Source: Ranitomeya imitator
Taxonomy: Eukaryota
Length of the DNA: 64,000 nt
Direction of reading: 5' to 3'
Assembly: GCF_032444005.1 (NCBI RefSeq)
Contig: NC_091285.1
Span: 632,276,001-632,340,000 of the forward strand
Shown here in pieces: positions 5,179-57,674 of this stretch. How positions within the stretch are numbered: position 1 is the stretch's first letter; each line of letters starts with the position of its first letter. The notes beneath the pieces are model-generated. The model saw only the letters and a program-made list of their open reading frames with translations. It ran no database searches and had not been told where the DNA came from. A program made the translations under genes and the position numbers.

Positions 5179-6347
5179 TGGATCTCCCCGTCAGGGCGGT
5201 GGGGTACTCGGTACCGGGTCCTGCGGTTCACAAGGGGATGTCACGGTGGCTGACCCGGTCTGTGGCCCTGGGACGTCCGTGTAAAAGGGAAAGGTCTTTA
5301 AAGGGTATAAAGTTTGTGTTTGTGATGCCACCTGTGGTATTCGGTCAGGGTGACCGACGCTGCTTTAAGGGGTCCGCTGGGGTGATGTTATGGCAGCTAG
5401 ATGGTATACCTTACCACAGGTGAAGTATGTCCCCAGGGCTTCCCAGTGTGTAGATGGTGAATGATGAATGGCGCAGTGAAGAACGAGGACACAAGGTTGC
5501 AGTCTCTTTATCTTTACTGAAGGCTTCAGCGTCCACAGTCTAGGGCACCAGACTACAGGGTAGGCAGAGTCCGGCCGGTTTGGAGGCAAGCCCAGAGTTC
5601 CCTTTGTCCAGGTGGAAATCAGTAGCCTTCCTTTGCGCTGCAGTGTTGTAGTCCCTTACTGCTAAGCTTCTCATAAGGTCCTCACAACTGTTGTAGATGT
5701 TATGTCTCTCTCTGTCCCCCGGATAGGAAAAACCCATATGACTGGTGGCTTGAGGCGGTTTATAGTGACTCTATCATGCCCCAGCCTCTAAGGGGTGCCA
5801 CCGTGCCTCCTGGGTGTAGGGCGGACAGGTAACGTGAAATTAGCTGTCCTGCCAGTCTCTGGAGCAAGGCATAATGGTTGTTACTCCCCTGGTTTTCCGG
5901 CTACTATGCTTCTGCGCTTCAGAAGGAGGCAGCCTGTATAGGGTTGGTCCCCTTCTGATATCCACTCCTTTGCTACGACTTCCTTGCACGCTCGCTGCAA
6001 TACAGTTCAGCCTTCGTTGTCTATTTCTAGGAGCTGCAGCTCTGAGGGCATGCATAGCTCCGTGTCCTTCTCCTTTGCTCTCTGACAGGATCCTACCTCT
6101 GCCAGGGACCAAATAACTGAGCGGAGCACAGCCAGCAACAACTGACTAACTTTCCCTACAGGCGACCAGTTTTACCAGTGTGGGGAGTGACCTAATAAAT
6201 AGGAGCTAGAGCTCCCCCTGGTGGCCAGGAGTGTGAAATGTTTGTAATACCTGGATGCAGTTATCCTTCTTTGCCTCCAAACATAACACCACTCTCCCCT
6301 AGAGGAGAATGACATTACTGCAACGACCAGGACCCTGGGGCGCTGCA
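5179..6347 (-). mobile_element. Solo LTR (Gypsy-type, 4-bp TSD CTTG)
   Basis: TG...CA ends, CTTG on both sides; reverse-complement homology to 13655-14933. Confidence 0.8.
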
Positions 6348-8626
6348 CTTGCAAAACGCCAAAACTAACAGGCAAAAATAGGACTGAATTTGTGTGATTA
6401 GTGTGGGTCCTGATTGGTAGATACAGGGCTTCAGTATTGGAAAAAATAGGACGCGGAACCGCTGCGTGAGTAGAGAGACTTGCTGATCAGGACTGTGGTG
6501 ACAAGCTTGGTTGTAACGAAGTAGGGCGAAACAGTGTGTTTCACTGGCCCTGGTGTAAACTACTGAAGACGGATACTGTGGGAATGAAAATACTGTAAGA
6601 GAAGACTTTGTACCCACTATCCCTTATACATAACCTTTACCAAGTTACAGTTCAGCAAAGATTTTATTTTTTAATGGAAATCTAATTTATTGAACTGCGG
6701 AAAGGAAGGTCCTGGCCAGCCAACACCATCGGCTACTACTGGCAGCATGCGCGGGTATACAGCCCTCACAGCATTAGCAGCAACACCCAGCCAGGACCCA
6801 CACTTTCATGTAGCATACCAAGGTGTAAAAAGAGGAGACAAGAGCCTCGCCCACGGCTATCGTCCTACGCCATGCTACACTTGGTGTAATTGGCAGGATC
6901 AAGTTTTGCATCTGCGAGGACTGTGCAGTGCAAAGAAGACTGACAAGGAAGATGGCAACCATTAAATGGTCTAAGATGGCACCGAACAAGGACAGCAAGA
7001 TGGAGGTGAGTGGCACCAAATGCGACACGGGCTCTCCCATCGTGGGTGTGACAGAGGCGAAAAGGTACAAAGTGCAGCCAAACCATTCAGCATGTATGCC
7101 TTCCCAGGGGAATACCACAACCAAAAGCACCAGCTGGGAGTGTCCGTAGTCGCAGAGTGAGGTGGAAGGAGAAGATCTTCCCAGGAAGGTGTGGCTTGAG
7201 GAAATGGGGAGGGACATTCGGAAAATGGTGAGTCAGGGTGGACTCCACCCTCTGAAAGGCGGGGCCATGACGGGCCTCAAGAAGTGGAAGAGACACCGCT
7301 ATTTGTGGATTGCGTCTGCGAACCCTGCCAAAAGCAGAAATAGTGGATCCAAATCCAAAAACGTTGATAGACCGCATCGGGGCCTGTAGTGGCTCACCTA
7401 ATTGAGAAGGGCGGGAATGCAGTGAGTGGTGGAGGCTTATGGCCTTGATGCAGTCAGAGGTGAAGCCAAGCTTCTTAACGGAACAGGTCACTCAATCTTT
7501 AGACTCTGAAATATGGACTGGCTGAATGCCTCAAAGCCTTGTTGGCCCAGTGTCCTGTTAGTCCCACACACTGAAGATTCCTCCTCCAACCCTGACGGTC
7601 TTTCCTCCAATCGTGGAGGCGCCTTCCCCAGACTTGGAGGTAGTGCTCAGCCCTGGGGATATACTTCTCATTACATAAAAGGAATGAAATGTGGGGGTCA
7701 TCCAGGTTATGAAGAAGAAAGAGCAATGGGTCTGAGCCCAGCTGGAAAGTCCTGACTGAGAGGAGTTTGTCCGACAGATGACCCAGGGGGTCATGAGGTA
7801 CTGTGACCACAGACAAGTCTTCGGTTTCATCATGGAGGAAGTGACCGGGTACAAGGTCTATATGAACGCCAGTTTTCTCCAAAAGGGGCCAAGCCTACAA
7901 GAAGAGTTCAGTTCCTCAAATAAGATGGACCAAGGTGCTGGTTCGCTACTGCAGTCTCCAGAATCAGGTCGCAGACAGGAGAGGTACCTGAAGATGTTCC
8001 TCCTCGACAGGGGGGGCCCTTCAGCACCTGGTGTTGCTACGTCCTTGGGAGCGAGACCACGGAACGACAGTGGGCAAATTGTCTTGAGTTCAGTCTTCTG
8101 AATCTCTGCAGTGCTCAGCAGGGGGCATGCTGTAGTGATGTCATTGTGCCATCTGCCCTGAGACATCACAGAGTCAGAGAACGCTGAAGACACTGGAGTT
8201 GCATGGAACAAGGAGAATATTTAAGGGGGGGCACCCGGTGTCAGCGCAGGCACTGGGTTCCCCCAACTCACAGATCCCATAGTGTGATGATGTCCCCAGA
8301 GGGCGAGTGGGCCCCCACTGTTCATCCAGGGCCCCGGCAGTTGCCTGGGTGTGGTGGGTTCTGACACCGACCCAAGCCGGTCGACCTCCTCCTCCTCTTC
8401 CTCCTCTTCCTCTTCTTCCACTTCCTCTTCCTCTTCTTCCTCTTCAAAATTTCTAATTTTTGGGGATTCAATTGACTTAAATTCAAACATATCCATAAAA
8501 ATTAGTACCTCCTCCACACATGACTGCAGACTCGTATAGTCACATAAACCTCAGCATCGGAAGAACCAAAGAACGAAGACCAGTGCGGTGGACTAAGAAG
8601 CTGCAGTAGCGGGAGAGGCGGCTTAA

Positions 8627-10643: not shown

Positions 10644-12295
10644 CAGTTAGGGCCAGAAATATTTGGACAGTGACACAATTTTCGCGAGTTGGGCTCTGCA
10701 TGCCACCACATTGGATTTGAAATGAAACCTCTACAACAGAATTCAAGTGCAGATTGTAACGTTTAATTTGAAGGGTTGAACAAAAATATCTGATAGAAAA
10801 TGTAGGAATTGTACACATTTCTTTACAAACACTCCACATTTTAGGAGGTCAAAAGTAATTGGACAAATAAACATAACCCAAACAAAATATTTTTATTTTC
10901 AATATTTTGTTGCAAATCCTTTGGAGGCAATCACTGCCTTATGTCTGGAACCCATGGACATCACCAAACGCTGGGTTTCCTCCTTCTTAATGCTTTGCCA
11001 GGCCTTTACAGCCGCAGCCTTCAGGTCTTGCTTGTTTGTGGGTCTTTCCGTCTTAAGTCTGGATTTGAGCAAGTGAAATGCATGCTCAATTGGGTTTAGA
11101 TCTGGAGATTGACTTGGCCATTGCAGAATGTTCCACTTTTTGGCACTCATGAACTCCTGGGTAGCTTTGGCTGTATGCTTGGGGTCATTGTCCATCTGTA
11201 CTATGAAGCGCCGTCCAATCAACTTTGCAGCATTTGGCTGAATCTGGGCTGAAAGTATATCCCGGTACACTCCAGAATTCATCCGGCTACTCTTGTCTGC
11301 TCTTATGTCATCAATAAACACAAGTGACCCAGTGCCATTGAAAGCCATGCATGCCCATGCCATCACGTTGCCTCCACCATGTTTTACAGAGGATGTGGTG
11401 TGCCTTGGATCATGTGCCGTTCCCTTTCTTCTCCAAACTTTTTTCTTCCCATCATTCTGGTACAGGTTGATCTTTGTCTCATCTGTCCATAGAATACTTT
11501 TCCAGAACTGAGCTGGCTTCTTGAGGTGTTTTTCTGCAAATTTAACTCTGGCCTGTCTATTTTTGGTATTGATGAATGGTTTGCATCTAGATGTGAACCC
11601 TTTGTATTTACTGTCATGGAGTCTTCTCTTTACTGTTGACTTAGAGACAGATACACCTACTTCACTGAGAGTGTTCTGGACTTCAGTTGATGTTGTGAAC
11701 GGGTTCTTCTTCACCAAATTAAGTATGCGGCGATCATCCACCACTGTTGTCATCCGTGGACGCCCAGGCCTTTTTGAGTTCCCAAGCTCACCAGTCAATT
11801 CCTTTTTTCTCAGAATGTACCCAACTGTTGATTTTGCTACTCCAAGCATGTCTGCTATCTCTCTGATGGATTTTTTCTTTTTTTTCAGCCTCAGGATGTT
11901 CTGCTTCACCTCAATTGAGAGTTCCTTTGACCGCATGTTGTCTGCTCACAGCAACAGCTTCCAAATGCAAAACCACACACCTGGAATCCACCCCTGACCT
12001 TTTAACTACTTCATTGATTACAGGTTAACGAGGGAGACGCCTTCAGAGTTAATTGCAGCCCTTAGAGTCCATTGTCCAATTACTTTTGGTCCCTTGAAAA
12101 AGAGGACGCTATGCATTACAGAGCTATGATTCCTAAACCCTTTCTCCGATTTGGATGTGGAAACTATCATATTGCAGCTGGGAGTGTGCACTTTCAGCCC
12201 ATATTATATATATAATTGTATTTCTGAACATGTTTTTGTAAACAGCTAAAATAACAAAACTTGTGTCACTGTCCAAATATTTCTGGCCCTAACTG
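10644..12295 (-). mobile_element. Full-length Tc1 (DD34E) DNA transposon
   Basis: 35-bp perfect TIRs (CAGTTAGGGCCAGAAATATTTGGACAGTGACACAA), TA on both sides, 1652 bp long. Confidence 0.96.
10899..11936 (-). CDS. Tc1 transposase, 345 aa, uninterrupted
   Basis: Paired-like HTH N-terminus, GRPR linker, WTDETK / QMDNDPKH / SPDLNPIE catalytic triad with 34-aa D-E spacing. Confidence 0.95.
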   Translation of the reverse strand: MRSKELSIEVKQNILRLKKKKKSIREIADMLGVAKSTVGYILRKKELTGELGNSKRPGRPRMTTVVDDRRILNLVKKNPFTTSTEVQNTLSEVGVSVSKSTVKRRLHDSKYKGFTSRCKPFINTKNRQARVKFAEKHLKKPAQFWKSILWTDETKINLYQNDGKKKVWRRKGTAHDPRHTTSSVKHGGGNVMAWACMAFNGTGSLVFIDDIRADKSSRMNSGVYRDILSAQIQPNAAKLIGRRFIVQMDNDPKHTAKATQEFMSAKKWNILQWPSQSPDLNPIEHAFHLLKSRLKTERPTNKQDLKAAAVKAWQSIKKEETQRLVMSMGSRHKAVIASKGFATKY

Positions 12296-13202: not shown

Positions 13203-16007
13203 CTAGATGGTAGCCCTATTCTAACGCATCGGGTATTCTAGAATATGTATGTAGTTTACTGTATTTATGAAGATTTTAGAATAATACATTGAATACACAG
13301 GATTCGGCCGGCCTGGTGCGACCAATTAGTGAAGCGTGGTTCAAATCCCGCACCAATTCGCGGCTGGACTGCACCTGATGCTGATTGTTTGCGGCCGGCC
13401 ACGTAGTATATAGCACAGCCACGTAGTATATAACAGCCCATGCAGTAAATAGCACAGCCACGTGGTACATAGCACAGCCACGTAGTATATTACACAGCCA
13501 CGTAGTATATAGCACAGCCCATGGAGAACACAGCACAGCCACATAGTATATAGCACAGCCCACGGAGTGTATAACAGCCCACATAGCATATAACACAGCC
13601 ACGTAGTTTATAACAGCCCTCGTAGCATATAACACAGCTCACGTAGTATATAACTGCAGCGCCCCAGAGACCTGGTCGTTGCAGTATAGCGCTCTGCCAC
13701 TAAGGGGAGCAGCGGTACGTCTGATGGCACTAAAGAGTTATCCTGACCAGGTATCACCAGAACACATTACACTTCACACTCCGGCCACTAGGGGGAGCAA
13801 AAGGCTTTATTTATTGGGCCACTCCTCACACTGGTAAAACTAGGGGCTGGGGAGGAAGTTAGTCAGAAGCTGACTGGGTTGGATTCAGGCAACATCCCGT
13901 GGCAGGGGGTGTTGCAGGGAGAAGACACAGGGGGGTCCCTGTCAGGCGTGGGAACCTGGCAGGTGCCTAGCGAACAGAACAGAACGTAACGGGACCGCGC
14001 CTGCACTACCTTGCGGTGGTATCCTAAGAAAGAGACAAGAAGGGAAGGATATTGTGGAACAGTGTAAATGAGATCAGCACAAAGGAGAGCCAGTAAGAGT
14101 CGTGCCGAGAGAGGAAGGCAACATCTTACTGAGGCACGTAGCCGGTGGCCGGATCACCGTAGGAGTAACTGACTTCAGGCCTTACTTCAAATTCCGCTGG
14201 ACAGTTAATCATAGGTTGGCTGTCTACCTTCTACACCTACGAAGACATAGGGGGCAACATTGGGAGAGGGGCGTCTCTAGGGTCCCGGAAGACCTCCAAG
14301 CCTTCCCGTCAAACGGGTGGCGTCCTAGCCATAACATATCTGGGGGACGTTAGAAACTAGCAACATCTGGAACCAAAGAACGAGAGAGAGAGAGCTGTAG
14401 AGAACGAACGAACGAGAACAGCAGTTGTGAGGACTATTCCGAATGCTCAGCAGGGTAGGACTACAACACACAGGCGCTATTGGTAGGCAACGATTTCCAT
14501 CTGTGAGGGAAACTCTGGATGTGCCCATCGGTCCGGCCGGTCTCAGAGAGCCTTGTTGAACGTACTCTGGATTGAGGATCCTGAAGCCTTCAGTAAAGAG
14601 GTAAAGAGACTGCAACCTTGTGTCCTCGTTATTGACTGCGCCTTACACCATCACCATCCACCTTACTGGGAAGCCCTGGGGACATACTTCACCTGTGGGA
14701 AGTTATATCATCCAGCTGCCATTCCATCACCCCAGTGGACCCCACAGCAGCGTCGGTCACCCTGACCGAACACCACAGGTGGCGTCACGAACCATTGACA
14801 GACTGTACAAATCCCTTTACTGGACGCCCCTTAGCAGGGTCACGGACCGGGTCTAGCCACCGTGACAGCCTCAGAACCGAACCAGAGAGGCCCGGTACCG
14901 AGAACTCGTGGCCCTGTGTCTGGGGGCGCTCCATAACAGCTAACGCACACAGTATATAACACAGCCCACGTAGTATATAACACAGCCCACGTAGTGTATA
15001 GCACAGCCCATGTAGTGTATAACACAGCCCACGTAGTATATAGCACAGCCACGTAGTATATTGCACAGCCACGTAGTATATAGCAGCCACGTAGTATATT
15101 GCACAGCCACATAGTATATAACACAGCCCACATAGTATATAGCACAGCCACGTAGTATATTGCACAGCCACGTAGTATATTGCACAGCCACATAGTGTAT
15201 TGCACAGCCCACGTAGTATATTGCACAGCCCACCTAGTATATTGCACAGCCCATGTAGTATATTGCACAGCCCACGTAGTATATTGTACAGCCCATGTAG
15301 TATATAGCACAGCCACGCAGTATATTGCACAGCCACGTAGTATGTTGCACAGCCACGTAGTATATAGCAATGTGGGCATCATATCCCTGTTAAAAAAAGA
15401 ATTAAAATAAAAAATAGTTATATACTCACCCTCCGTCGTCCCCCCGGATCCAGGCGAGGCGGTTACCGATGCTCCTCGCGCGCTCCGGTCCCATGAGTGC
15501 ATTGCGGTCTCACGAGATGATGACGCAGCGGTCTCGCGAGGCCGCTACGTCATCATCTCGTGAGATCGCAATGCATGGAGCGGTCACCGGAGCGTCGTGA
15601 GGAGCGGGAAAGGCCTGTTCTGGATCCGAGGGGCCGACGGACAGTGAGTATATAACTATTTTTATTTTTTTTTATTATTTTTAACATTAGATCTTTTTAC
15701 TATTGATGCTGCATAGACAGCATCAATAGTAAAAAGTTGGTTACACAGGGTTAATAGCAGCATTAACGGAGTGCGTTACACCGCGGAATAACGCGGTCCG
15801 TTAACGCTGCCATTAACCCTGTGTGAGCGCAGACTGGAGGGGATTATGGAGTGGGCACTGACTGCGGGGAGGAAGGAGTGGCCATTTTGCTGCCGGACTG
15901 TGCCCGTCGCTGATTGGTCGTGGCTGTTTTGCCGCGACCAATCAGCGACTTGGGATTTCCGTGACAGACAGAAGGACAGACAGACGGAAGTGACCCTTAG
16001 ACAATTA
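13203..16007 (-). mobile_element. Non-autonomous Helitron-like element with ~20-bp minisatellite
   Basis: On the - strand it ends with a CCCGAT...ATAGGG hairpin then CTAG|T; internal (CACAGCCACGTAGTATATAG)n; 5' end in the gap. Confidence 0.7.
13655..14933 (+). mobile_element. Solo LTR (4-bp TSD TAAC) inserted in a Helitron-borne minisatellite
   Basis: TGCAGCGCCCC...GGGGCGCTCCA termini, TAAC duplicated. Confidence 0.88.
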
Positions 16008-16276
16008 NNNNNNNNNNNNNNNNNNNNNNNNNNNNNNNNNNNNNNNNNNNNNNNNNNNNNNNNNNNNNNNNNNNNNNNNNNNNNNNNNNNNNNNNNNNNN
16101 NNNNNNNNNNNNNNNNNNNNNNNNNNNNNNNNNNNNNNNNNNNNNNNNNNNNNNNNNNNNNNNNNNNNNNNNNNNNNNNNNNNNNNNNNNNNNNNNNNNN
16201 NNNNNNNNNNNNNNNNNNNNNNNNNNNNNNNNNNNNNNNNNNNNNNNNNNNNNNNNNNNNNNNNNNNNNNNNNNNN

Positions 16277-19218: not shown

Positions 19219-20379
19219 CTAACATGTTGATCCAGATGAAGGCAGATACCCCAGAGGGCAGACACTAATAGCTCCATATTAGGGGAAATATTCCTTTCCG
19301 ACTCCATACGGCAATCAGACTAGTTTCCAGGATAACAAAACTCTAGTAACTGGGGACACTTAAATGGAAAAACTCAGCTCCAAAAAGGCTATTTACCTGC
19401 CGGTATAGTGGTAATCTGCAGGTAAATAGCTTTTAAGTAAAATATGGCAGTATTCCTGGAGCAGTGGCTACTGAGAGAAAATTAAGTTATATTTTCCCTG
19501 CAGCTGCTCACTTCCAGTTATCGGGGTGGTGCAGGGAGCTGATACAGCCAGTCATCACTCATTATACAGTGAGTGCATTGTAATTACTCCCCAGCACAGT
19601 GATTGACAGCCTTCTGTGCAGTGTATTTGCAGTGTGTATGCAGTGTGTGTGCAGAGCAGAACCTCCTTGCATCTTGTGTCAGCATCAAGAGATCACTGCA
19701 GCCAATAACTGACCGTAGCAGTGATCCGATAGTCAACCTGCGGATGACCTGAATGTAAGGAGTGACCAAGATGACATTGAATATATGGAAGTACTGAGTA
19801 TACTGTTTGCCTGGGGAAAGGCACCCAGTGCCGGAATATAAGATCAGATCTCAGTAGGGTGAATCTCAAACTCCCCAGTTTGGTAATGATCCCCTTAATG
19901 TGAGTGGGTGTGGGGCAGCCTTTACCATGTCCCCTCCACTAGCTTTGGAGCTCATAGTCACACAAGCAAATTCATGCACATGCTAATCACAACTGGGGCA
20001 TGCATACGCCAAGGCTTAAAGGGTACAGAATTAGGAAAAGCACATACTAACCCTAGAAATGAATATTAAAATATAACAAGAAACGTAGCTGCCATCTCTG
20101 TTCCTTAGTCTGCAGTATTTTCTGCTGAAACTGAATCGTAAAAATCCTGCAGAGACCAGGGGTTAATCTGACGATCAGTTACATTTTTGAGATGTGGCAG
20201 ATAGAAACAGGAAGGGATCTCAGTAATTTTGGTCCTGCAGTAGACAGGACAGAGGGGGGAGGCTCCTGCTGCAGGCAGTTGTCTCACAGCCACACACAGT
20301 GTAGGATGGGGCTAGGGCTGTAGTCATGGCCGACAGTAATCCCTGTATCACCCGCTGGTCCCTTCCCTTCTGAGTACCT

Positions 20380-20753
20380 ATAAGTATATAAGGGGACAAT
20401 ACAAATATCTCGCTGAGGATCTGTTTATACCAAGGAAGGTGACGGGCACAAGGGGGCATTCTTTGCGTCTGGAGGAGAGAAGGTTTTTCCACCAACATAG
20501 AAGAGGATTCTTTACTGTTAGGGCAGTGAGAATCTGGAATTGCTTGCCTGAGGAGGTGGTGATGGCGAACTCAGTCGAGGGGTTCAAGAGAGGCCTGGAT
20601 GTCTTCCTGGAGCAGAACAATATTGTATCATACAATTATTAGGTTCTGTAGAAGGACGTAGATCTGGGTATTTATTATGATGGAATATAGGCTGAACTGG
20701 ATGGACAAATGTCTTTTTTCGGCCTTACTAACTATGTTACTATGTTACTATGT
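20380..20753 (+). mobile_element. CR1 LINE 3' end inserted in one LTR
   Basis: ORF2 C-terminus TRGHSLRLEERRF...RGFFTVRAVRIWNCLPEEVV..., (ACTATGTT)n tail, TACCT duplicated; absent from the sister LTR. Confidence 0.9.
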
Positions 20754-22055
20754 TACCTCGGTACTGCTCCTATACTCCATCTTGGTTCTCCCGGTACGGG
20801 GTTATTTCCTCTGCAGACGGTTCCACAAATAAAGAGTCACAGTCCGGCTTTGCTTTAACTTCAACTCTTTTACTCAGCACTGCATCATCCATGGCACAAT
20901 CAATCACAGCAATTGGCAACGCTTTCCCTTGCTCCTTCTCTGCCGCTAAGCCTGTCCCCGGGATGGACCATATTTTCTGCCGTTTTGCCCCGGTCCTAAG
21001 AATAGCGGCCCACGCAAAAATCTGCCACATGTTGGATTACTTGCTCCCATTCTGCTTTGCCTTCTTCCTCAGTGCTACAGCCCCAGTCACTCTGCGTAAG
21101 GCTAGCTCTGCTGCTGTACTCTCTTCTATGCTCTGGCCCCCTGGATGCTAGATGCTGGGCCCGCTCTACTAAAACGTTATGTAGCACCGTGTTACCCTGG
21201 GCTAGACAGCCCTAGTGAGCTACACAGGCTCCCCGGCCCCAACTAACTAAAACCGGGAAGACCTCACTATCTTATCCCACCGTGCCCCTCCTACGTTAAC
21301 TATTTCCTATCCTAACTACCTCTAAGCTATAAGGCTAACCCTGCAATGCTCCCATCTACTGGCCAATTTGAGGTACTACTACCCTTAGCACTATACCTTC
21401 AACTAGTGACCGGCCCAGGGTGCTCACTTTCCCTAACATGCAGTAGATGTGCAAGTCATATTAACAATCAGAACATTAATTGTAATACACATTATTAGTG
21501 TAGCAGTACCAAAAAAAAACACAGTAGTGATAATACACCAAATAGTGTAGCAGTATCACATTAAATAAACATATAAAAGGCATAAAACATATTAATATCA
21601 CACTCCTTACATTCCCCTTTCTTTTAATATGGTTGTCTTTAACCATTGAAAAACTTTAATAATATATATAACTATACTTTAATAACAAGGAGGACTCAGT
21701 ATGAGTCAAGTCCATATGTACACTTTTGTGAACGGGAGACACTAAGAACACAGTTCTTAGAAAAGTCCTGCTTTTCCAGTAGAATGGGCTCAATAGGTGC
21801 AACAAAAACAAAACAAAAGAGTCCATAGGCTCTAAATATAACACACCCAGCTCGCAGTCCTCTGGATCAAAATAGGCACACATAAAAGAAGACACAAATG
21901 TCCTTATGACTGCTTCTGGTTATGAAACTCCCCTGTTCTTTGGGGAAGGAACTCCAGGGCATCTACCTTTTCCTGGAAGGATGCAGTACAGTCCATCATC
22001 ATTTTTTTTTAGTGCAATGGCACAACACAAGTTCAGTCTCTACTCCTTCTCCTCT

Positions 22056-22814
22056 TTAATGGCACATGCCCCATGCCGCTCCAGTCTTAGCGGAATCCCA
22101 TTCCCGGTTTCGGGACGGGGGTGACTCTGCAGCCGCAGAAGCCACAGGCTGCCATGATGAGACAGCTGTGGTGGGGGCTTGGGAGGCAGAAGCTGTGTGA
22201 GGCACCGACCGGGCCAAACTCGAGCCCGCGTACAGCTTCATCTCCTCCGGGGTGCAAAGGGTGACAGCCACCGCAAAATAGCCCCGAAGGCAATTTTCTT
22301 TGAAAAAGGAGACCCAATCCCCTTCTTCCAAGGGTCTCCCAAACTTCACTGAGGCGGCATAGATCTTCTCATTAGACCCGACCTCGCAGATGAACCTGAA
22401 ACCACGACCTAATTCTACGTAGACCAGCTGGCCATAGGTACACCGACCAGCCATAGCACCACCTCCTGACCGACGTAACTCGGCCCACACCTCCTTTTCC
22501 CTCTTTTTCTTCTGTTCCACTATGTCAGCTATCCAGGCCAACTGGTCTGGAGAAGGAAACGGGCCCTCAGTAACATGGGCAGGACATGCGACTCCCTGGG
22601 AACCCTGGGTGCTCGCGACGTGCCTCCCCTCAAATACCCAGCGAGCCGTCGTACGCCCCAGGACTTCTGACTCCTCTCGCACAGGACGGTTGGCCGCGGC
22701 AGGGGTGAATAACCCGGATCGGGCTCTGGGAGCAGATGATAGGGAAGAAGTCTCGCTCTCTTGGGGCATGGGTCGATCCACACTCACCACCTCGGGTTGC
22801 TGTCTCCGGACCAT
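22056..22814 (-). CDS. Element-borne 252-aa ORF with a cold-shock-domain-like segment
   Basis: GQLVYVELGRGFRFICEVGSNEKIYAAS...LEEGDWVSFFKENCLRGYFAVAVT aligns by eye to the CSD consensus. Translation is not demonstrated. Confidence 0.55.
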   Translation of the reverse strand: MVRRQQPEVVSVDRPMPQESETSSLSSAPRARSGLFTPAAANRPVREESEVLGRTTARWVFEGRHVASTQGSQGVACPAHVTEGPFPSPDQLAWIADIVEQKKKREKEVWAELRRSGGGAMAGRCTYGQLVYVELGRGFRFICEVGSNEKIYAASVKFGRPLEEGDWVSFFKENCLRGYFAVAVTLCTPEEMKLYAGSSLARSVPHTASASQAPTTAVSSWQPVASAAAESPPSRNREWDSAKTGAAWGMCH

Positions 22815-24882
22815 ATCCTATCCGTGACTGCTGCATCTTTCCACACAGGTGGTGCGGACTGATCTTTCTGGAAGTAGTTTCGGCTTCGGCCTTGCTTCCG
22901 GTTCAGGCTCCCATTGGCGTGAAGACTCCGGTCCAGATGGAAGCCCCGGCTCCTGACGTCGGTCATCCCGCCCCACTGGGCCTGGTCGCTTGACGTCTTC
23001 TGGGTGTTGTACGGCCTCAAGCAGCCACTGGGGTCCCCATCAGGTAAGGGTACCGCTCTCCACGCCTCGCCGTTCCGCTGTACAGGTTGGGTACTCTCTC
23101 TCCCCTCCCACCATCTCCATTCTAGATGGCTCACTTCTCCGTAGCTCAGCGTGCAGGACCGATGCATTGCCGCTGGTGGCGGGTTGCATAATGGCACCGC
23201 GCAGCTGCACCCATGAGTTTCTTGTGGGCCCCACCCATTCCAGGGTGGGATAGCTTCCAGCCAATCCACCCATTCTCTTTCAAGTAGTCTCAGGAAGCGT
23301 GGGGCTAGGTGTCTTTAGCACTTCCTCCGGAGGTGCCGCCTGAAAGATCTTTGCGCCATTTCCGTGCAGTCACGCTCATGAAAGGTGTGGGCACAGCAGT
23401 TGTCTCTGTGTTTGGCGCCATTCTCTGCCACCTCGGCCGCCATCTTGGTCACATCAGTCCTTTGCAAATTTCTTGTCACCTCCAGATTTCTTGTCACCTC
23501 CAGGTGATCCGTTCCTCCTGGAGTCTCGGTTTTGGTCTAATCCAGTATATTATTTCCATTGTTGCAATGTTCAACCCGCTCATCTCGGGTCTCCTCCGCT
23601 ACGGTTTCACCACCATATGGGACAATGAGATGCTGCTGACTATGTCAAGTGTAGGATGGGGCCAGGGCTGTAGTCATGGCCGAAATTAACCCATGTATCA
23701 CCTGCTAGCCCCTTCCCTTCCAAGTACCTCGGTACTGATCCTCTACACCATCTGGGTTCTCCCGGTACAGGGTTATTTCCACAAATAAAGAGTCACAGTC
23801 TGGCTTCACTTTAACTTCAACTCTTTTACTCAGCACTGCATCATCCAGGGCACAATCAATCACAGCAATTGGCAACGCTTTCCCTTGCCTCTTCTCTCTG
23901 CGGCTAAGCCTGTACCCGGGACGGAACGTATCTCCCGGTCCCTCAGTGTCCTCAATGCCCAGAATCTCTGCTTCTCGTGGGGGTATTTTATGCCATATCG
24001 ACTCGGTCCTAAGAATAGAGGCCCACGCAAAAATCTGCCACATGTTGGATTACTTGCTCCTGTTCTGCTTAGCCTTCTTCGTCAGTGCTACAGCCCCAGT
24101 CACTCTGTGTGGGCTAGCTCTGCTGCTGTACTCTCTTCTATGCTCTGGCCCCCTGGATGCTAGATGCTGGGCCCGCTCTACTAAAACGTTATGTGGCACC
24201 GTGTTACCCTGGGCTAGACAGCCCTAGTGAGCTACACAGGCTCCCCGGCCCCAACTAACTAAAGCTGGGAAGACCTCACTATTTTATCCCACCATGCCCG
24301 ACCCACGTTAACTATTTCCTATCCTAACTACCTCTAAGCTATAAGGCTAACCCTCCAATGCCCCCATCTACTGGCCAATTTGAGGTACTACTCTCCTTAG
24401 CACTATACCTTCAACTAGTGACCGGCCCAGGGTGCTCACTTTCCCTAACATGCAGTAAATGTGCAAAACATATTAACAATCAGAACATTAATGGTAATAC
24501 ACATTATTAGTGTAGCAGTACCAAAAAAAACACAGTAGTCATAATACACCAAATAGTGTAGCAGTATCACATTAAATAAACATATTTAAGGCATAAAACA
24601 TATCAATATCACACTCCCTACAACAGAAAAAGAGGAGAAGGATGAGTGGGACAAGATTGAAAAGATTTCTTTGTTTATAACAAGATATGGTGAAGGAAAC
24701 ACAGAAAATGAAGAAAGGAATTCCACTGGTATTTTTATTTTGTATTCTTCAAATTGTAGTGATCTTTTATGTTACGCTCATGTCTTATGGATAAGCATGT
24801 GGGTCATTTAGAAGATAAATTCTATCAGAAGTCAAAGTGTGTTAGTGATAAATCTGGTTCTCTTGATGTAACATGACTCTTT

Positions 24883-25074
24883 GGCCATGTTCACATGGTC
24901 AGTATTTGGTCAGTATTTTACATCAGTATTTGTAAGTCAAAACCAGTGAGCGATACATACAGAAGTGGTGCATATGTTTCTATTATACTTTTCCTCTGAT
25001 TGTTTCACTCCTGATTTTGGCTTACAAATACTGATGTAAAATACTGACCAAATACTGAACGTGTGAACGTGGCC
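24883..25074. mobile_element. PIF/Harbinger-like MITE 26 bp upstream of SFTPB exon 2
   Basis: GGCCATGTTCACA ... TGTGAACGTGGCC|TTA. Confidence 0.7.
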
Positions 25075-25100
25075 TTAAGGTGTCTTCTCTCTTTCCACAG

Positions 25101-29020: not shown

Positions 29021-30231
29021 GGCCCCATCCTGGTATAATGTCCCTCATTATGGGCCCCATCCAGTAATAATGTCTCCCATCCTGGGTCCCTTCCTGTAGT
29101 AATGTCCGCCAATGCCATCCTGACCTCTTCCTATAATAATGTTCTCCATCCCGGGCCCCTTCCTGTAATAATGTCCCACATCCTGGGCTCCTTCCTGTAA
29201 TAAAGTCACCATCCTGAGCCCCATCATGTAATAATGTCCCTCATCCTGGGCTCCTTCCTCTAATAATGTCACCATCCTGAACCCCATCTTATAATAATAA
29301 CCCACATCCTGGGCCCCTTCCTGTAATAATGTCACGATTCGGAGCCCCATTCTGTAATAATGTCCCCCTTCCTGTAATAATGTCACCATCCTGAGCCCCA
29401 TCCTGTAATAATGTCCCCCATCCTGGGCCCCTTCCTGTAATAATGTCACCATCCTGAGCCCCATCTTATAATAATAACCCCCATCCTGGGCCCTTTCCTG
29501 TAATAATGTCACCATCCTGAGCCCCATCTTATAATAATAACCCACATCCTGGTCCCCTTCCTGTAATAATGTCACGATTCGGAGCCCCATTCTGTAATAA
29601 TGTCCCCCTTCCTGTAATAATGTCCCCCATCCTGGGCCCCTTCCTGTAATAATGTCACCATCCTGAGCCCCATCTTATAATAATAATCCCCATCATGAGC
29701 CCCTTCCTGTAATAAGGTCACAATTCTGAGCCCCATCCTGTAATAATGTCCCCCATCCTGGGCCCCTTCCTGTAATAATGTCACCATACTGAGCCCCAGC
29801 CTGTAATAATGTCCCCCATCCTGGGCCCCTTTCTGTAATAATGTCACCATCCTGAGCCCCATCTTATAATAATAACCCCCATCCTGGGCCCCTTCCTGTA
29901 ATAATGTCACCATCCTGAGCCCCATCTTATAATAATAATCCCCATCATGAGCCCCTTCCTGTAATAAGGTCACAATTCTGAGCCCCATCCTGTAATAATG
30001 TCCCCCATCCTGGGCCCCTTCCTGTAATAATGTCACCATACTGAGCCCCAGCCTGTAATAATGTCCCCCATCCTGGGCCCCTTTCTGTAATAATGTCACC
30101 ATCCTGAGCCCCATCTTATAATAATAACCCCCATCCTGGGCCCCTTCCTGTAATAATGTCACCATCCTGAGCCCCATCTTATAATAATAACCCCCATCCT
30201 GGGCCCCTTCCTGTAATAATGTCACCATCCC
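29021..30231. repeat. ~31-bp minisatellite with higher-order variant pattern (SFTPB intron 2)
   Basis: Alternating CCCCATCCTGGGCCCCTTCCTGTAATAATGT and CACCATCCTGAGCCCCATCTTATAATAATAA units. Confidence 0.95.
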
Positions 30232-30424
30232 CAAGACAATTCAGCTGAATGTGTGTCCTTGGACTCAATTGCAGCTTAAATAGGTGCTAGCTTTGGCGGG
30301 CCCTCCTCCCAAAGTGGCCCAATCACAGCCGCACCTCTATAACAGCCAGGTTATGAGCCATTATATAAATGACCAGGTAACTGACCCTCCTACTATTCAA
30401 TGATTTGTCTCTTCCTCCAAACAG

Positions 30425-34764: not shown

Positions 34765-36586
34765 GTAAGAAGGCAGCGGTGTGACTAAAGGAGCTGCAGA
34801 TGCAGGCTATAGGGCCAGATTATAAGAAGGGCCCCCGTAATACAAATTCAAGAACCTCCTTCCCTACTATCCGCCTGGTAATCGTATCTGGCAAAGACGA
34901 GGTGACCAGACATGCATGCAAGACTCTTAGGTTAGATTCTAGGACCACCTTCCCACTTCTCTACATTTTTTCCGTTGTCTGCACCAACATCCTTAGTAGA
35001 AATCTGCTCTGATTATTGCATTTTTTTATGTTTTTTTTTTGCTTTGCTTTACCCTTTTTTTTATGTGGATTTGAAATGACGTGTTTTTAATGGATTTTTT
35101 TGTGCGAAACCACAAGAATTCTGCACCTATAAAGATAATTACTAGTGATGAGCGAGTGTACTCGTTGCTCGGGTTTTCCTGAGCACGTTCGGGTGACCTC
35201 CGAGTATTTATGACTGCTCGGAGATTTAGTTTTCATCGCGGCAGCTGAATGATTTACAATGCTCGGACTGGCCAGCGGCTCTTCCGACCCGAGCGTGATC
35301 ACTTCATATATTTTTATGCAGCTGTCACAGTCGGGACGGATGAGCCGCCGGTCAGACCAAGCATTGCGGTCCGATCAGAGTCCGATTTATACGGCCGTCT
35401 GACTGCACCTTTACATGCCTCTTTCAGGCTCTCCATAAAAGCAAAACAAAGACTCTGTAAACTCACAGTGACCATTAGTTTTCTGCACAAATCCATGCAT
35501 TGCACAGAGCACAGCTTTTATATGTGCGAACATGGCTAAGGCTTCGGAGTATTTCGCAGCTGTTTTGTAGGATTGTAAAAAAAAATGGACTCCCAAAATT
35601 CATGACGTGCTTTACAGGTAGTATAGAGTGGAGTTTTCTTTACAGAGATATTTACTTTGCCTTCTCCATACACCTCGGTGGAGAGAGCCACGCACATGAG
35701 CTACCATCTCTGCTATATGTAAAGCTGGGCAGGAAAAGTCTGTATCCGAGACACAGCGTGGGGCTGTAGGGTTTCATTCGGCCGAGTGTGATTTGTAAAC
35801 CCCGAACACCAGTGAAACACGTGAGGGAAGATATTGTCACACTATCGGTACTGCTTCCTTGAGGGTCGGTGGCAGCAGCCTGCGATGTAGTGTGGTGGAG
35901 GGGATGAGCAAGGAAGAAGGAGAGGCCATCATAGATAACAACAGAACGGCCTTCGCTGAGGTAAAAGCTGAAGAACAGACATAACGGGCATAACATGGCC
36001 ACTTTGATTTGACAGAGTTGCCAAAGAGGTGACTGTACATGGCGACACTTTACATTTCTTTTTTCAAGGAGACTTCTCAGTCATTAGTTTCCGTCATTAG
36101 AACCTTCTTCACCGCAGTTGCCTTTCCAGATGCTTCCATGAGGCAAGAGTTAAACTTCCTTCTCTAAATCTTCCACACTAGGTTGGCGACTTGTAATCCA
36201 CCTCTGGTATGAAGGCGACCTTGTCCAGTCCACAGAGGTCTCAGGACCACCAATAGCTTCTCCATCGTGGTTCCCAACTACGATCCCGTTTGGGCCTCTC
36301 CCAGCTTCCAACTGAGCCACTTTGATGGCTTCCTGTTCTGGTAGCCTCTTCTTTCTGTCTGGTTGATGGTCACTGTGCTGTAACTACAGGCACCCTGGTG
36401 GACTAGGCCTCTACAGCACCTTAGGGTCGTCTCAGATGTCGGTGATAATCAGTCTGATGTCGGATCACAACGCACGAACCGGCTGCACATCTCCTGACCC
36501 GAAAGTGACAGCTTTAGATCAATTTACATGCGGAAAATCTCCACAAAATTTCTTAATATTCTCATTAATCAGCTAGTTCTGTATAA

Positions 36587-37956
36587 GGCTACTTTCACAC
36601 ATCAGGTTTTTGGTTTCAGGCTAAATCCTGCAAATTTGCAAGAAAACGGATCCGGCGTAAATTGTGAAAAACTGATGCACCGGATCCGTTTTTTAGGAGA
36701 GAGAGAGAGTGGAAGAGAGAGAGGGGGAGAAAGAGAGCGGGGGAGAGAGAGCGGGGGAGAGAGAGAGAGGAGGGGAGAGAGAGGGGGGGAGAGAGAGGGG
36801 AAGAGAGAGGGGGAGAGAGAGGGGAAGAGAGAGGGGGAGAGAGAGGGGGAGAGAGGGGGGAGAGAGAGTGGGGAAAAGAGAGTGGAAGAGAGAGAGGGGG
36901 AGAGAGAGAGCGGGGGAGAGAGAGCGGGGGAGAGAGAGAGGGGGGGAGAGAGAGGGGGGGAGAGAGAGGGGGGGAGAGAGAGGGNNNNNNNNNNNNNNNN
37001 NNNNNNNNNNNNNNNNNNNNNNNNNNNNNNNNNNNNNNNNNNNNNNNNNNNNNNNNNNNNNNNNNNNNNNNNNNNNNNNNNNNNNNNNNNNNNNNNNNNN
37101 NNNNNNNNNNNNNNNNNNNNNNNNNNNNNNNNNNNNNNNNNNNNNNNNNNNNNNNNNNNNNNNNNNNNNNNNNNNNNNNNNNNNNNNNNNNNNNNNNNNN
37201 NGGGGGAGAGAGAGCGGGGGAGAGAGAGAGAGGGGGGGAGAGAGGGGGGGGGAGAGAGGGGGAGAGAGAGAGAGGGGAAGAGAGAGGGGGAGAGGGGGGA
37301 GAGAGAGGGGGGAGAGAGTGGAAGAGAGAGAGGGGGAGAGAGAGCGGGCGAAATAGAGAGGGGGAGAGAGAGGAAGAAAGAGGGGGGGAGAGAGGGGGAA
37401 GAGAGAGGGGGGAGAGAGAATGGGGGAGAGAGGGGGAGAGAGAGGGGGGAGAGAGGGGAAGAGAGAGAGGGGGAAGAGAGAGGGGGGAGAGAGAGCGGGG
37501 AGAGAGGGGAAGAGAGAGGGGGGAGAGAGTGGAAGAGAGAGAGGGGGAGAGAGAGAGAGAGCGGGCGAAATAGAGAGGGGGAGAGAGAGGGGGGAGAGAG
37601 GGGGAGAGAGAATGGGGGAGAGAGGGGAAGAGAGCGAGGGGGAAGAGAGAGGGGGGAGAGAGAGCGGGGAGAGAGGGGAAGAGAGAGGGGGGAGAGAGTG
37701 GAAGAGAGAGAGGGGGAGAGAGAGAGAGCGGGCGAAATAGAGAGGGGGAGAGAGAGGGGGGAGAGAGGGGGAGAGAGAATGGGGGAGAGAGGGGAAGAGA
37801 GCGAGGGGGAAGAGAGAGGGGAGAGAGAGCGGGGAGAGAGGGAGAGAGGGGGAGAGAGAGAGAAACGGATCCGGCGTAAGAAAAAAAACGGATCCGTTTT
37901 TTTCAAAAACTGCCGGATTGTGCCTGAAACAAAGAACCTGATGTGTGAAAGCAGCC
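36587..37956. mobile_element. PIF/Harbinger-like MITE enclosing a GA-rich tract
   Basis: GGCTACTTTCACACATCAGG ... CCTGATGTGTGAAAGCAGCC termini with TWA-type flanks. Confidence 0.7.
36698..37863. repeat. Near-pure polypurine (GA/GGA) low-complexity tract containing an assembly gap
   Basis: Almost only G and A on the + strand. Confidence 0.95.
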
Positions 37957-38444
37957 TTATGCTATAGATTTTCCATATGCATTAACCATAAAGCTGTATT
38001 CATACAAATCAATGTCTGGGAGTCCGCTGTGATGTGACTCCATGTGAAGGACACAACAATCCATAGCTGAGGTGGTTTACCCAGGAAAGCACCATAATGA
38101 CGTGAATAGAAGTTACAGAAAACTCTGAGCCTAGGCAGATGGAAGCTTCTCTAATTTCCTTGTATTTTATTAGCGGGGGCTTAGCCAACTTTTCAATAGG
38201 GGCATTTAATTGGATGGCCTCTGGATGAATAGCAGTGTCGACAGCAAAACCAATACTGATCAATCCTTTCTTATATCGGATAGCATATGATAATTTTTTT
38301 ACTGAAATTCATCAAAATGCTGCCACCTAGTGGTCATATTTCAATGCAAAACATAAACGGAATAATTACCTATATGTTTACCATTACGCATTAATTCTGG
38401 AGGGTTCCTTCACTGTGAATGATGTTTTTTTTCTATTTTCTCAG

Positions 38445-46615: not shown

Positions 46616-47028
46616 AGGGAATCGGTCAGCTGTTTTTTTTTTGCTATGCAATTTGAGAGCAGCATGATTTTGGAGCAGAGACCCTGATTCCAGAAATGTA
46701 TCACTCATTAGGCTGTGTATAACTGTTTCAATACAATCAGGTGTTTTATCAGCAGGACATTATCACTACAGGACTAGATGTCTCGTGCCTCCTGGTCCAA
46801 CCACACCTCCACAACTGATTGCACACTAATCTGCCAATCAGTGATGTGGACGGGGTTATACAGGGCTCGGCATTCTGAACTCTGCTAGATCTGCAGCAGA
46901 GAAAACAGTGATTCTATCGCAACTGCTGCACCCAGTAAACTAAGCAGTATATCTCTGGAATCAGAGTCTCTGCCCCTACATCGTGCTGCTCTCAGATTAC
47001 ATAACAAAATCCTGCTGACCGATCACAT
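46616..47028. mobile_element. T2/Kolobok-type MITE
   Basis: TTAA|AGGGAATCGGTCAGC ... GCTGACCGATCACAT; interior homologous to 38567-39023. Confidence 0.7.
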
Positions 47029-47176
47029 TGAATGTTTTTCTATGGAAGTTTAATTTGCAATATTCTACAATTGTGGTGACCTCCATGACAACCTTGGTTG
47101 CACAGGACGAGGTGCTAATAAGGTGTGTTCTTAACAAATGGTGACAACATGCCACTGAAAATGACAGTATACGCAC

Positions 47177-47312
47177 ATGGTGGAGAACGTGGATCCGGTA
47201 TGAGCCTTCGTTGGGTTTCCCATCATGCACTATGTTGGCTATAAGATCATATGTGGTGTTCTTGTGCTGAGTCTGACATTCGTCTGCCAGATACTCCCGT
47301 AGATCCACGTTC
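47177..47312 (-). CDS. USP39: USP39 exon 11
   Basis: NVDLREYLADECQTQHKNTTYDLIANIVHDGKPNEGSYRIHVLHH. Confidence 0.97.
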
Positions 47313-47584
47313 CTAGGAAAACAAATAAAGGGGGAAAAATCCGACATTGGGAATCGCCAAAACCCAGAAATATCTTTTTCACATTGAAATTCCTAATAAA
47401 TCTGGAGTGATTAAATGGCGATATTCCTCATGGTAAAATATATGCACAAAAGCTCCAATGTCACCGTGCAATGAATGAGCAATCACCCATCATTAGTGAG
47501 CCGCCATTATTAATACACGGCCCCGCTCAGTCATCCAGCGCCATAATACCGCACTGTGGTCACCGTACGGTGCGAGATACTCAC

Positions 47585-48479: not shown

Positions 48480-48503
48480 CGTGTGTGTGTATATATATAT
48501 ACA

Positions 48504-50142
48504 CTAGCTATTGAACCCGTTCTACGGCCGGGTGGCGAGCATTTATATTGGTATATGGTCTCCATCCTGGTATGTGCTGCTCCATCCTGCGTCCCCATCC
48601 TGTCATGTGCTGCTCCATCCTGCGTCCCCATCCTGTCATGCGCTGCTCCCATCCTGCGTCCCCATCCTGTCATGCGCTGCTCCCATCCTGCGTCCCCATC
48701 CTGTCATGCGCTGCTCCCATCCTGCGTCCCCATCCTGTCATGCGCTGCTCCCATCCTGCGTCCCCATCCTGTCATGTGCTGCTCCATCCTGCGTCCCCAT
48801 CCTGTCATGCGCTGCTCCCATCCTGCGATGTGCTGCTCCATCCTGCGCCTCCATTCTGTCATGTGCTGCTCCCATCCTGCGTCCCCATCCTGTCATGCGC
48901 TGCTCCATCCTGCGTCCCCATCCTGTCATGCGCTGCTCCCATCCTGCGTCCCCATCCTGTCATGTGCTGCTCCATCCTGCGCCTCCATCCTGTCATGTGC
49001 TGCTCCATCCTGCGCCTCCATTCTGTCATGTGCTGCTCCCATCCTGCGTCCCCATCCTGTCATGCGCTGCTCCCATCCTGCGTCCCCATCCTGTCATGCG
49101 CTGCTCCATCCTGCGTCCCCATCCTGTGATGCGCTGCTCCCATCCTGCGTCCCCATCCTGTGATGCGCTGCTCCCATCCTGCGTCCCCATCCTGTCATGC
49201 GCTGCTCCCATCCTGCGTCCCCATCCTGTGATGCGCTGCTCCCATCCTGTGATGCGCTGCTCCCATCCTGCGTCCCCATCCTGTCATGCGCTGCACCCAT
49301 CCTTATGTGCTGCTCCATCCCGAGTCCCCATCCTGTCATGTGCTGCTCCCATCCTGCGTCCCCATCGTTATGTGCTGCTCCATCCTGCGTCCCCATCCCG
49401 TCATGTGCTGCTCCATCCTGCGTCCCCATCCTATCATGTGCTGCTCCATCCTGCGTCCCCATCCTGTTATGTGCTGCTCCCATCCTGCGTCCCCATCCTT
49501 ATGTGCTGCTCCATCCTGCGTCCCCATCCTTTCATGTGCTGCTCCATCCTGCGTCCCCATCCTGTTATGTGCTGCTCCCATCCTGCGTCCCCATCCTTAT
49601 GTGCTGCTCCATCCTGCGTCCCCATCCTTATGTGCTGCTCCATCCTGCGTCCCCATACTGCCTCTGACCCGCTCGGCGCCGAGTGCTGGGGGGCCTGAGC
49701 AGGCGGGGACACCGGCGCGCTGTGGGGGTCAGGTGCTGGTATCGCCGCCAGCTCAGGCCCCCCAGCACTTACTATATTCACCTGTCCTGCGTTCCAGCGC
49801 TGGGCGCCGCCATCTTCCCGGTCTCCTGTCTGTGACTGTTCAGTCAGAGGGCGGCGCCTGCGCGCATTAAGCGCGTCATCGCGCCCTCTGAACTGAAGGT
49901 CACAGGCCGAAGACCGGGAAGATGGCGGCGCTCAGCGGTGGAACGCAGGACAGGTGAATATGGCCGATACTCACCCTCCCTGGCGGTCCCTGCTTCTCTG
50001 TTGGAGATCGCGGTGTGCGTTCAGTGTGAACGCACACCGCGATCTCCTGGGAGCGTCACTCTGTGAGGCCCAGACTGCGCCGGCGCTTGCGCAGTCTATA
50101 AAGGCTTCGGACAGAGTGACGCTCCCAGCGTTATATTATAGA
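48504..50142 (-). mobile_element. Helitron-like element (second family) carrying a 34-35-bp minisatellite
   Basis: 5' TC at 50142, 3' hairpin CCCGGCCGTAGAACGGG then CTAG, inserted at A|T with no TSD. Confidence 0.75.
48563..49640. repeat. Minisatellite (CATCCTGCGTCCCCATCCTGTCATGCGCTGCTCC[C])n
   Basis: About 30 imperfect units, directly visible. Confidence 0.95.
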
Positions 50143-54473: not shown

Positions 54474-54665
54474 NNNNNNNNNNNNNNNNNNNNNNNNNNN
54501 NNNNNNNNNNNNNNNNNNNNNNNNNNNNNNNNNNNNNNNNNNNNNNNNNNNNNNNNNNNNNNNNNNNNNNNNNNNNNNNNNNNNNNNNNNNNNNNNNNNN
54601 NNNNNNNNNNNNNNNNNNNNNNNNNNNNNNNNNNNNNNNNNNNNNNNNNNNNNNNNNNNNNNNNN

Positions 54666-57214: not shown

Positions 57215-57674
57215 CTAGAAAACACACAAACAATAAGTAAAGGGATCTGTAAGGCTCTGATTACAAATGCTATACACTAAAGGCTACGCGGCCCGGGACC
57301 AGTCAGACCCATCGTGTTATGTTCTATGCAGAGGACAGGAGCGTGTTAGGGTGCTGGGCAGTGTTCACACAGTGCAAGGATAATGAACACCTACAGCTGG
57401 TGCCCTCAAAAGTGTTGTGGCCCACGTACCCAAGCACCCAGAGGCCCACGTAGCCCAGGCACCCAGCAGCCCACGTAGCGATTAAACGTCAAAAACAATC
57501 TAAGCATTTTCCCTGCCATAAAAGCAACTGAATGAACAACTCTGAGAAGACTTCATAATTACTGGTAACATAGAAACCAATTTCTTGCAACAACTGAAGG
57601 TTCAAGGTCACGCAGAGAATAGAAAAATGTGCTACATGGTCAAACTAAAATGTATCTGGACAAACAAGAAGCTG

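Follow-up and report, generated by a model that had tools for sequence, protein, structure and literature searches.

The question raised by a locus in the frog Ranitomeya imitator is what kind of retroelement carries, between two long terminal repeats (LTRs), an open reading frame (ORF) that resembles a cold-shock domain (CSD) and no recognizable gag or pol. The locus, here called element A, occupies positions 20300-24622 on the minus strand of the window, by which we mean the whole 64,000-nt stretch of DNA that was analysed (NC_091285.1, positions 632,276,001-632,340,000, forward strand). Element A is a complete LTR retroelement without recognizable gag-pol, and it is probably an old, dead copy of a non-autonomous, pol-less lineage of frog LTR elements that encodes a single CSD-bearing protein.

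The completeness of the element had been claimed in an initial annotation made from the sequence alone, and all of the parts listed there were found in place: LTRs with TG...CA ends, a 4-bp target site duplication (TSD; ACAG), a polypurine tract (PPT) and a primer binding site (PBS) agreeing with tRNA-Ser at 14 of 18 positions (Table 1). The long direct terminal repeats occur in two copies, 20300-21611 and 23650-24622 (direct-repeat search families D1-D6, blastn), and the positions of the PPT and the PBS fix the sense of the element as the minus strand. In this sense both LTRs start with TGTA(A/G)GG and end with CCTACA, giving TG...CA termini with short inverted ends. The LTR length of about 0.95 kb given initially holds for the right copy (973 bp) and for the original part of the left copy (933 bp), which with a later insertion now spans 1312 bp. 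A 5-bp target duplication at the flanks of the element was considered and rejected, since the sequences do not match, and the 4-bp ACAG stands. An element on the plus strand, as might be read from an AATAAA on the opposite strand, was rejected as well: this signal would lie about 136 nt into the 973-nt LTR and upstream of any TATA-like site, next to the orientation given by the PBS and the PPT.

The reference string used for the PBS is the complement of the human tRNA-Ser 3' end as printed in PMC3299991. Because the score of 14/18 refers to this human string and not to the tRNA set of this species, other tRNAs are possible as primers. Counting both strands of the whole window, chance alone should give about 0.5 sites as good as this, and two exist; the tRNA-Ser sites with at most four mismatches are just the PBS of element A and that of a second element, B, which is described below.

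The interior of element A measures 2038 bp (21612-23649). In agreement with the initial annotation, which had recognized no gag, protease, reverse transcriptase (RT) or integrase (IN) in it, none of its stop-free pieces on either strand gave a Pfam match to gag, protease, RT, RNase H or IN, and the gag and pol coding capacity of an autonomous LTR retrotransposon or endogenous retrovirus (ERV) is absent. A retrozyme-type element was ruled out by an Rfam scan of 19800-25100, in which no ribozyme or other structured RNA was found inside the element.

What the interior does contain is an ORF of 252 aa, the largest present and sense to the element. The positions reported initially for this ORF (22814-22056) and for its CSD-like stretch (22436-22260) proved exact, and a charged helix precedes the stretch as described there. 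With the ORF as query, phmmer was run exhaustively against 1.84 billion representative proteins and gave one match, XP_073436531.1 (E 7.5e-17), a single-exon 'uncharacterized protein' of 431 aa from Dendrobates tinctorius that is nested within the range of a SLAIN-family gene. The similarity covers residues 94-191 of the ORF, with 46% identity and 70% positives (BLASTP), and thereby exactly the helix and the strand-rich stretch after it that the initial annotation had pointed out. The matching block forms the C-terminus of XP_073436531.1, which ends four residues past the domain, and no Pfam domain was found in the N-terminal part of this protein. Word-indexed protein searches with the ORF, with the domain of XP_073436531.1 and with an alignment of the two sequences yielded nothing beyond XP_073436531.1, and the domain was also looked for in viral and metagenome contigs, without a match. 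The comparison provides the 'uncharacterized protein' with a likely origin and a likely domain.

Long frames may arise by chance in DNA with a GC content of 60%, and the resemblance to a CSD would then be noise without a real gene behind it. The ORF indeed sits in a core of 58-62% GC, where long ORFs form more easily: frames as long as this one (253 codons) appeared in 23 of 2000 dinucleotide shuffles of the interior and in 48 of 2000 shuffles of the GC-rich core, thus in 1-2%. Several long antisense and overlapping ORFs are present in addition, and the window copy on its own has no significant family match. Such an origin is nevertheless highly improbable in view of a match with an E value of 7.5e-17 in a collection of this size, of positives confined to one block of 100 aa, and of the agreement of three libraries on the CSD with a significance that grows as members are added. 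The frame of the ORF contains 3 stops in 406 codons, as compared with 7-16 for the five remaining frames.

Stop codons at 22818-22820, 23040-23042 and 23280-23282 break the frame of the ORF upstream of its present ATG. There is also a second minus-strand frame, free of stops over 22787-23314 and with a stop at 23315-23317, and residues 39-98 of XP_073436531.1 match this frame weakly and colinearly, both by tblastn (E 0.003-0.07) and by phmmer (E 0.045), where it ranked at the top of 2148 six-frame pieces. This tentatively suggests an ancestral ORF of about 400-460 codons, with a window copy that would be interrupted in its upstream part by stops or by a change of frame relative to XP_073436531.1.

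The domain encoded by the ORF is very likely a highly divergent CSD, as judged from profile comparisons, while it is not a member of the family by Pfam's own criterion. The proposal of a CSD in the initial annotation thus stands as a remote relationship, found with the Pfam, NCBIfam and PDB collections, and does not extend to a Pfam-grade match of the window copy. With the domain of XP_073436531.1, the Pfam CSD was the top match (E 4e-4 to 1e-2, 16.1-20.6 bits). The NCBIfam models matched by XP_073436531.1 were CspE, the CSD-type Se72 retron effector and CspA; the window copy matched three CspD models, its sole matches, weakly (E about 0.1). A phmmer search of PDB sequences with the window ORF gave no match. 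When a profile of two sequences, the window domain and XP_073436531.1, was compared with all PDB chain sequences, 19 out of 19 matches were cold-shock proteins, the best one (E 0.0027) spanning essentially the whole of the 66-aa CspB. Inclusion of element B as a third sequence gave 29 CSD proteins among 30 PDB matches, with human CSDE1 at an E value of 1.1, and improved the best E value from 0.0027 to 2.7e-5 (27.3 bits), with an alignment that covers residues 2-63 of the 66 residues of CspB. The three collections therefore all point to the CSD alone, each of them weakly.

In comparison with known CSDs of PF00313 (CspA/CspB, YBX1, LIN28, CSDE1), the frog domain has a like length and five-strand spacing, an RNP1-like motif, an aromatic residue in RNP2, and an end-to-end alignment with CspB that includes the common turn G-x-x-L-x-E-G-D/Q-x-V-S/F. 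The RNP1 motif (KGFGFI) is well kept as RGFRFI in the window copy and as VFGFI in element B, and less so as REYGLI in XP_073436531.1. Of RNP2 (V-F-V-H-F) one aromatic residue is kept, a tyrosine, with His and Phe replaced (KIYAAS, KVYVNVAS). Unlike known CSDs, the frog domain contains a pair of conserved cysteines and has an additional basic helix on its N-terminal side, and it sits in a retroelement protein of about 400 aa. Low-confidence AlphaFold2 models place a helix at residues 89-115 of the ORF and at residues 5-27 of the XP_073436531.1 domain, and strands at ORF residues 130-135, 139-144 and 152-158; the positions of these strands agree with those of beta1-beta3 in the alignment with CspB, a hint at best.

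Further information on the lineage comes from element B, located at 6881-7959 on the plus strand. A PBS of the tRNA-Ser type is followed, about 800-1000 bp downstream and on the same strand, by the remnant of a helix and a CSD-like region, and the CA-CT-PBS junction is common to both elements. In an unbiased hmmsearch of all 2148 six-frame pieces of the window with the profile of element A and XP_073436531.1, the remnant was the top non-self match (E 0.028), the next piece following at an E value of 7.3. Sensitive tblastn gave an E value of 0.007, and the Pfam CSD was the sole Pfam match of the piece (E 0.14, 12.5 bits). Since these marginal matches coincide with a PBS, element B was accepted. 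DNA similarity between elements A and B was not detectable, LTRs included, and a 3' LTR of element B was looked for and not found. With the PBS type, the layout and the domain shared in this way, similarity at the protein level has outlived that of the DNA. Element B thus appears to be a far more decayed relative of element A, and the ORF would belong to an old and diversified lineage. Such persistence favours a lineage of long standing to which the ORF may have mattered, and speaks against a single recent capture.

Capture does occur in vertebrates. In birds, 46 ERVs with a CSD ORF have been described, the result of repeated and possibly adaptive acquisition (Mol Biol Evol 2025, PMC12287698). 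In the same way, the frog ORF could be a passenger, derived from a host CSD gene by transduction and without a role in replication. In a variant of this explanation XP_073436531.1 is itself a host gene or a domesticated one, which would agree with its annotation as a one-exon gene inside a gene of the SLAIN family and with its being the sole annotated protein of its kind. We regard this as improbable. Element A, element B and XP_073436531.1 are deeply diverged (46% and about 29% identity), and the common PBS type and layout of the two elements, with no DNA similarity left, imply long evolution within an element lineage. Moreover, the exhaustive search returned no vertebrate CSD protein of the YBX, LIN28, CSDE1 or CARHSP1 type at E<=0.001, and of the vertebrate CSD proteins just human CSDE1 was among the PDB matches.

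A different possibility is suggested by the position of the ORF after the PBS and a leader, which is the position of gag. The ORF could be a gag, with a CSD-like end, from an ordinary family of autonomous LTR retrotransposons or ERVs, elements A and B being internal-deletion derivatives without pol. Deletion derivatives are common, and the succession of a disordered N-terminal part and a nucleic-acid-binding module at the C-terminus mimics the logic of matrix, capsid and nucleocapsid (MA/CA-NC); gag is also often invisible to Pfam, so that blank Pfam results are no more than negative evidence. That said, no pol remnant is found downstream of the ORF in element A, nor a pol-like piece downstream of the domain in element B, and AT-rich non-coding DNA follows the ORF in both. 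The exhaustive search, too, gave no polyprotein or gag-pol bearing the domain, just the 431-aa XP_073436531.1, which is weak evidence because proteins of transposable elements are under-annotated in frog genomes. On balance, a gag origin by deletion is rather unlikely.

If elements A and B indeed belong to a pol-less lineage with a CSD-bearing protein of its own, the lineage would have retained the cis requirements of reverse transcription and integration, namely LTRs ending in TG...CA, a PPT and a primer site of the tRNA-Ser type. Its single protein, of about 400 aa, would have an N-terminal part of low complexity, then a basic helix and, at the C-terminus, a very divergent CSD. A pol-less LTR element needs RT, IN and a particle in trans, and an autonomous element would thus supply RT, IN and capsid; the 4-bp TSD, the TG...CA ends and the tRNA-Ser PBS do not separate a Ty3/Gypsy-type from an ERV-type helper. 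Known CSDs are chaperones that bind RNA and DNA in single-stranded form, and the frog protein may bind single-stranded nucleic acid, most likely the element's own transcript. One could speculate that, as a packaging adaptor or as a chaperone similar to nucleocapsid, it assists the entry of this RNA into the particles of the helper. Mobilization by a Gypsy element, as put forward in the initial annotation, is not supported, and the roles suggested there for the protein (replacing nucleocapsid function, biasing packaging, countering host silencing) are likewise speculative. Analogous small chaperone modules that are encoded by retroelements and coat or remodel their own RNA are the retroviral nucleocapsid and LINE-1 ORF1p, which are built from CCHC zinc knuckles and from a coiled coil, an RRM and a C-terminal domain (CTD), respectively.

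It is a tentative and rather doubtful extension of this explanation that an old anuran LTR lineage swapped gag-pol for one divergent-CSD protein, which was then kept under selection through the diversification of subfamilies. If true, the CSD protein would be a self-encoded substitute for nucleocapsid or a packaging adaptor, with which a pol-less element parasitizes the particles of another element, and a retroelement 'structural' gene would have a fold not used before for that purpose. The usual view of non-autonomous LTR elements is of hitch-hikers without coding capacity (TRIM, LARD, VL30, MaLR) or of parasites with gag alone; a third strategy would be that of a lineage without pol which maintains a nucleic-acid chaperone of its own, with a different fold. 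Together with the captures by bird ERVs, this would suggest that CSDs are a recurrent solution for the handling of retroelement RNA or for the evasion of host control.

Several observations weigh against a pol-less lineage with a CSD protein. The search with the Pfam CSD profile (PF00313) that had been proposed initially produced a top match below threshold for XP_073436531.1 and a blank for the window ORF, and the gathering score of 27 bits is reached by no family member, the best score being 20.6. The AlphaFold2 models of the 252-aa ORF and of the 107-aa domain (the latter with the two-sequence alignment) have pLDDT values of 37.5 and 37.8 and are uninformative. The statistical support for element B is marginal (E 0.007-0.03), and default BLASTP gave no alignment of its 50-aa piece with either the window ORF or XP_073436531.1. 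Two of the three family sequences are independent of our own judgement, the piece of element B having first been noticed by eye. XP_073436531.1 is known from protein annotation, and its locus is no more than a candidate for an LTR-flanked element. Neither LTR of element A has a canonical AATAAA or TATA in the sense orientation; an AGTAAA variant is kept in both. Finally, no helper was found in the 64-kb window, which contains no other LTR copy and no RT- or IN-like frame piece of at least 110 aa.

It is useful to compare element A with known non-autonomous systems. MaLR/THE1-MT, VL30 and ETn elements have the arrangement LTR-PBS-short interior-PPT-LTR, lack pol and depend for mobilization on proteins from an autonomous ERV related to them; inside, they are non-coding or carry remnants derived from gag. 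To our knowledge, no mammalian non-autonomous LTR element encodes a CSD protein that is conserved across subfamilies. TRIM and LARD elements have interiors without conserved coding capacity, from which element A differs by a domain that is conserved in XP_073436531.1 and element B. The bird ERVs mentioned above are, like element A, vertebrate LTR retroelements carrying a CSD ORF, and in this respect the initial statement that no vertebrate LTR family built this way had been described was too strong. They were identified and classified through their RT, pol being kept, their domain has the accession pfam00313, and the position of the CSD varies (PMC12287698), whereas the frog element has no pol or recognizable gag and a CSD-like domain that is sub-threshold for Pfam. 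Element A is thus no member of the bird ERV-A/B or ERV-G classes with a Pfam-grade CSD, and the analogy is functional. For pol-less LTR families, in frogs or in vertebrates at large, no description of one with a CSD ORF was found in the literature, a search that did not cover Repbase and Dfam.

An anuran parallel in organization is formed by the Xenopus elements 1a11 and Xretpos(L), with two LTRs, a single ORF and no similarity to pol, which are thought not to transpose by themselves (PMC4585706). Element A likewise has an LTR pair and a single ORF without similarity to pol. The protein of 1a11 is a 71-kDa Gag-like one, Xretpos(L) is reported to use tRNA-Arg, and a CSD is reported for neither (PMC4585706); element A has a Ser-like PBS and an ORF whose relative is just XP_073436531.1, a difference that is based on the descriptions and, for the protein, on a library that may lack the Xenopus proteins. 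The element is thus an unusual variation on known systems and not a wholly new kind.

The time of insertion can be estimated from the LTRs, which are 93.3% identical over 916 aligned sites with five indels (MAFFT, insertion removed). The Kimura two-parameter (K2P) distance is 0.070, or 0.057 outside CpG, which at an assumed rate of 1-2e-9 substitutions/site/year gives an age of roughly 20-35 million years. A gap of 379 bp in the LTR-LTR alignment is explained by an insertion of 374 bp plus a 5-bp TACCT duplication, the copies of which are at 20375-20379 and 20754-20758. The inserted segment has an open frame followed by a (ACTATGTT)n tail; it is a LINE fragment that we take to be of the CR1/L2 type from a C-terminal motif of ORF2 (Pfam gave no match), and its insertion postdates that of the LTR element. 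The copy of element A is old, decayed and inactive rather than an active parasite, as can be seen from LTRs that differ by 7%, one of them with a LINE fragment in it, from the four PBS mismatches and from the interrupted upstream coding region. Because the copy is dead, the practical importance of this locus is small.

Table 1 Coordinates of the features of elements A and B (window positions; the strand is given as a sign, or as a point where none applies)
Feature	Position	Strand	Description
Element A			
TSD, left copy	20296-20299	.	ACAG, read directly from the sequence
3' LTR (left on the plus strand)	20300-21611	-	1312 bp; 933 bp without the later insertion and its TACCT copy
Secondary insertion in 3' LTR	20380-20758	+	5'-truncated LINE 3' end (CR1/L2-like, presumed), (ACTATGTT)n tail, second TACCT copy
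PPT	21612-21625	-	AAAAGAAAGGGGAA (element sense), all-purine 14-mer directly adjoining the 3' LTR
AT-rich non-coding stretch	21626-22055	-	From ORF stop to PPT; GC 0.29-0.42; short frame pieces without Pfam matches
Largest ORF	22056-22814	-	252 aa, stop codon included in the coordinates; sense to the element
Divergent CSD-like region	22260-22436	-	ORF aa 127-185; RNP1-like RGFRFI, KIYAAS at the RNP2 position
Charged/basic helix	22470-22535	-	ORF aa 94-115, before the domain; kept in XP_073436531.1 (BLASTP), recognizable in element B
GC-rich region upstream of ORF	22815-23443	-	Probably a decayed remainder of a longer ancestral ORF, from its N-terminal part; tentative
PBS	23647->23630	-	TGACATAGTCAGCAGCAT; 2 nt (CT) past the 5' LTR; 14/18 to the tRNA-Ser 3'-end complement
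5' LTR (right on the plus strand)	23650-24622	-	973 bp; direct repeats, blastn, MAFFT
TSD, right copy	24623-24626	.	ACAG, 4-mer identical to the left copy
Element B			
PBS	6881-6898	+	tRNA-Ser type, 15/18; preceded by ...GCTACA and CT; window-wide scan
Helix and CSD-like remnant	7688-7959	+	Heavily decayed; stops at 7733-7735, 7757-7759 and 7921-7923, frameshift near 7900

Some minor observations were made in and around the two elements. The leader of element A, between the PBS and the coding region, contains a tandem duplication of about 19 bp at 23463-23510 (plus-strand coordinates), with ttcttgtcacctccag occurring twice. About 300 bp outside element A, the segment 24918-25037 on the minus strand gave a sub-threshold Rfam match to the MIR6149 precursor family (29.6 bits versus a gathering score of 100, E 0.008), for which a hairpin formed by chance or a small element with inverted repeats is the probable explanation. 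Near element B, the segments 5204-5694 and 6142-6350 (within 5204-6350, plus strand) recur in inverted orientation in 14905-13652 (minus strand), about 8 kb away and with 72-76% identity, and are bordered there by tandem arrays with a period of 20-21 bp (13398-13652 and 14946-15369). These segments could be LTR or terminal inverted repeat (TIR) material of another repeat that brackets element B and a Tc1 copy.

Elsewhere in the window, runs of N are present at 16008-16276, 36985-37201 and 54474-54665, all outside the elements described here. Long open frames of tandem-repeat or low-complexity type occur at 29051-30240 (minus strand), 36498-37981 (both strands), 48480-49931, 57546-58239 and 59110-60004; these short-period-repeat frames are not genes by any Pfam evidence, and repeats explain most of the other long ORFs of the window. 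Two apparently intact transposase ORFs of the Tc1/mariner type, of 345 and 355 aa, are found at 10899-11936 (minus strand) and 53153-54220 (plus strand), with matches to HTH_Tnp_Tc3_2 and DDE_3 (E 1e-13 to 1e-22). A UCH/USP ubiquitin carboxyl-terminal hydrolase domain was detected above the gathering score (E 2.6e-6) at about 47180-47325 on the minus strand, in the frame piece 47000-47392. A host gene of the USP family probably has an exon here, and the elements may be located within this gene or close to it.

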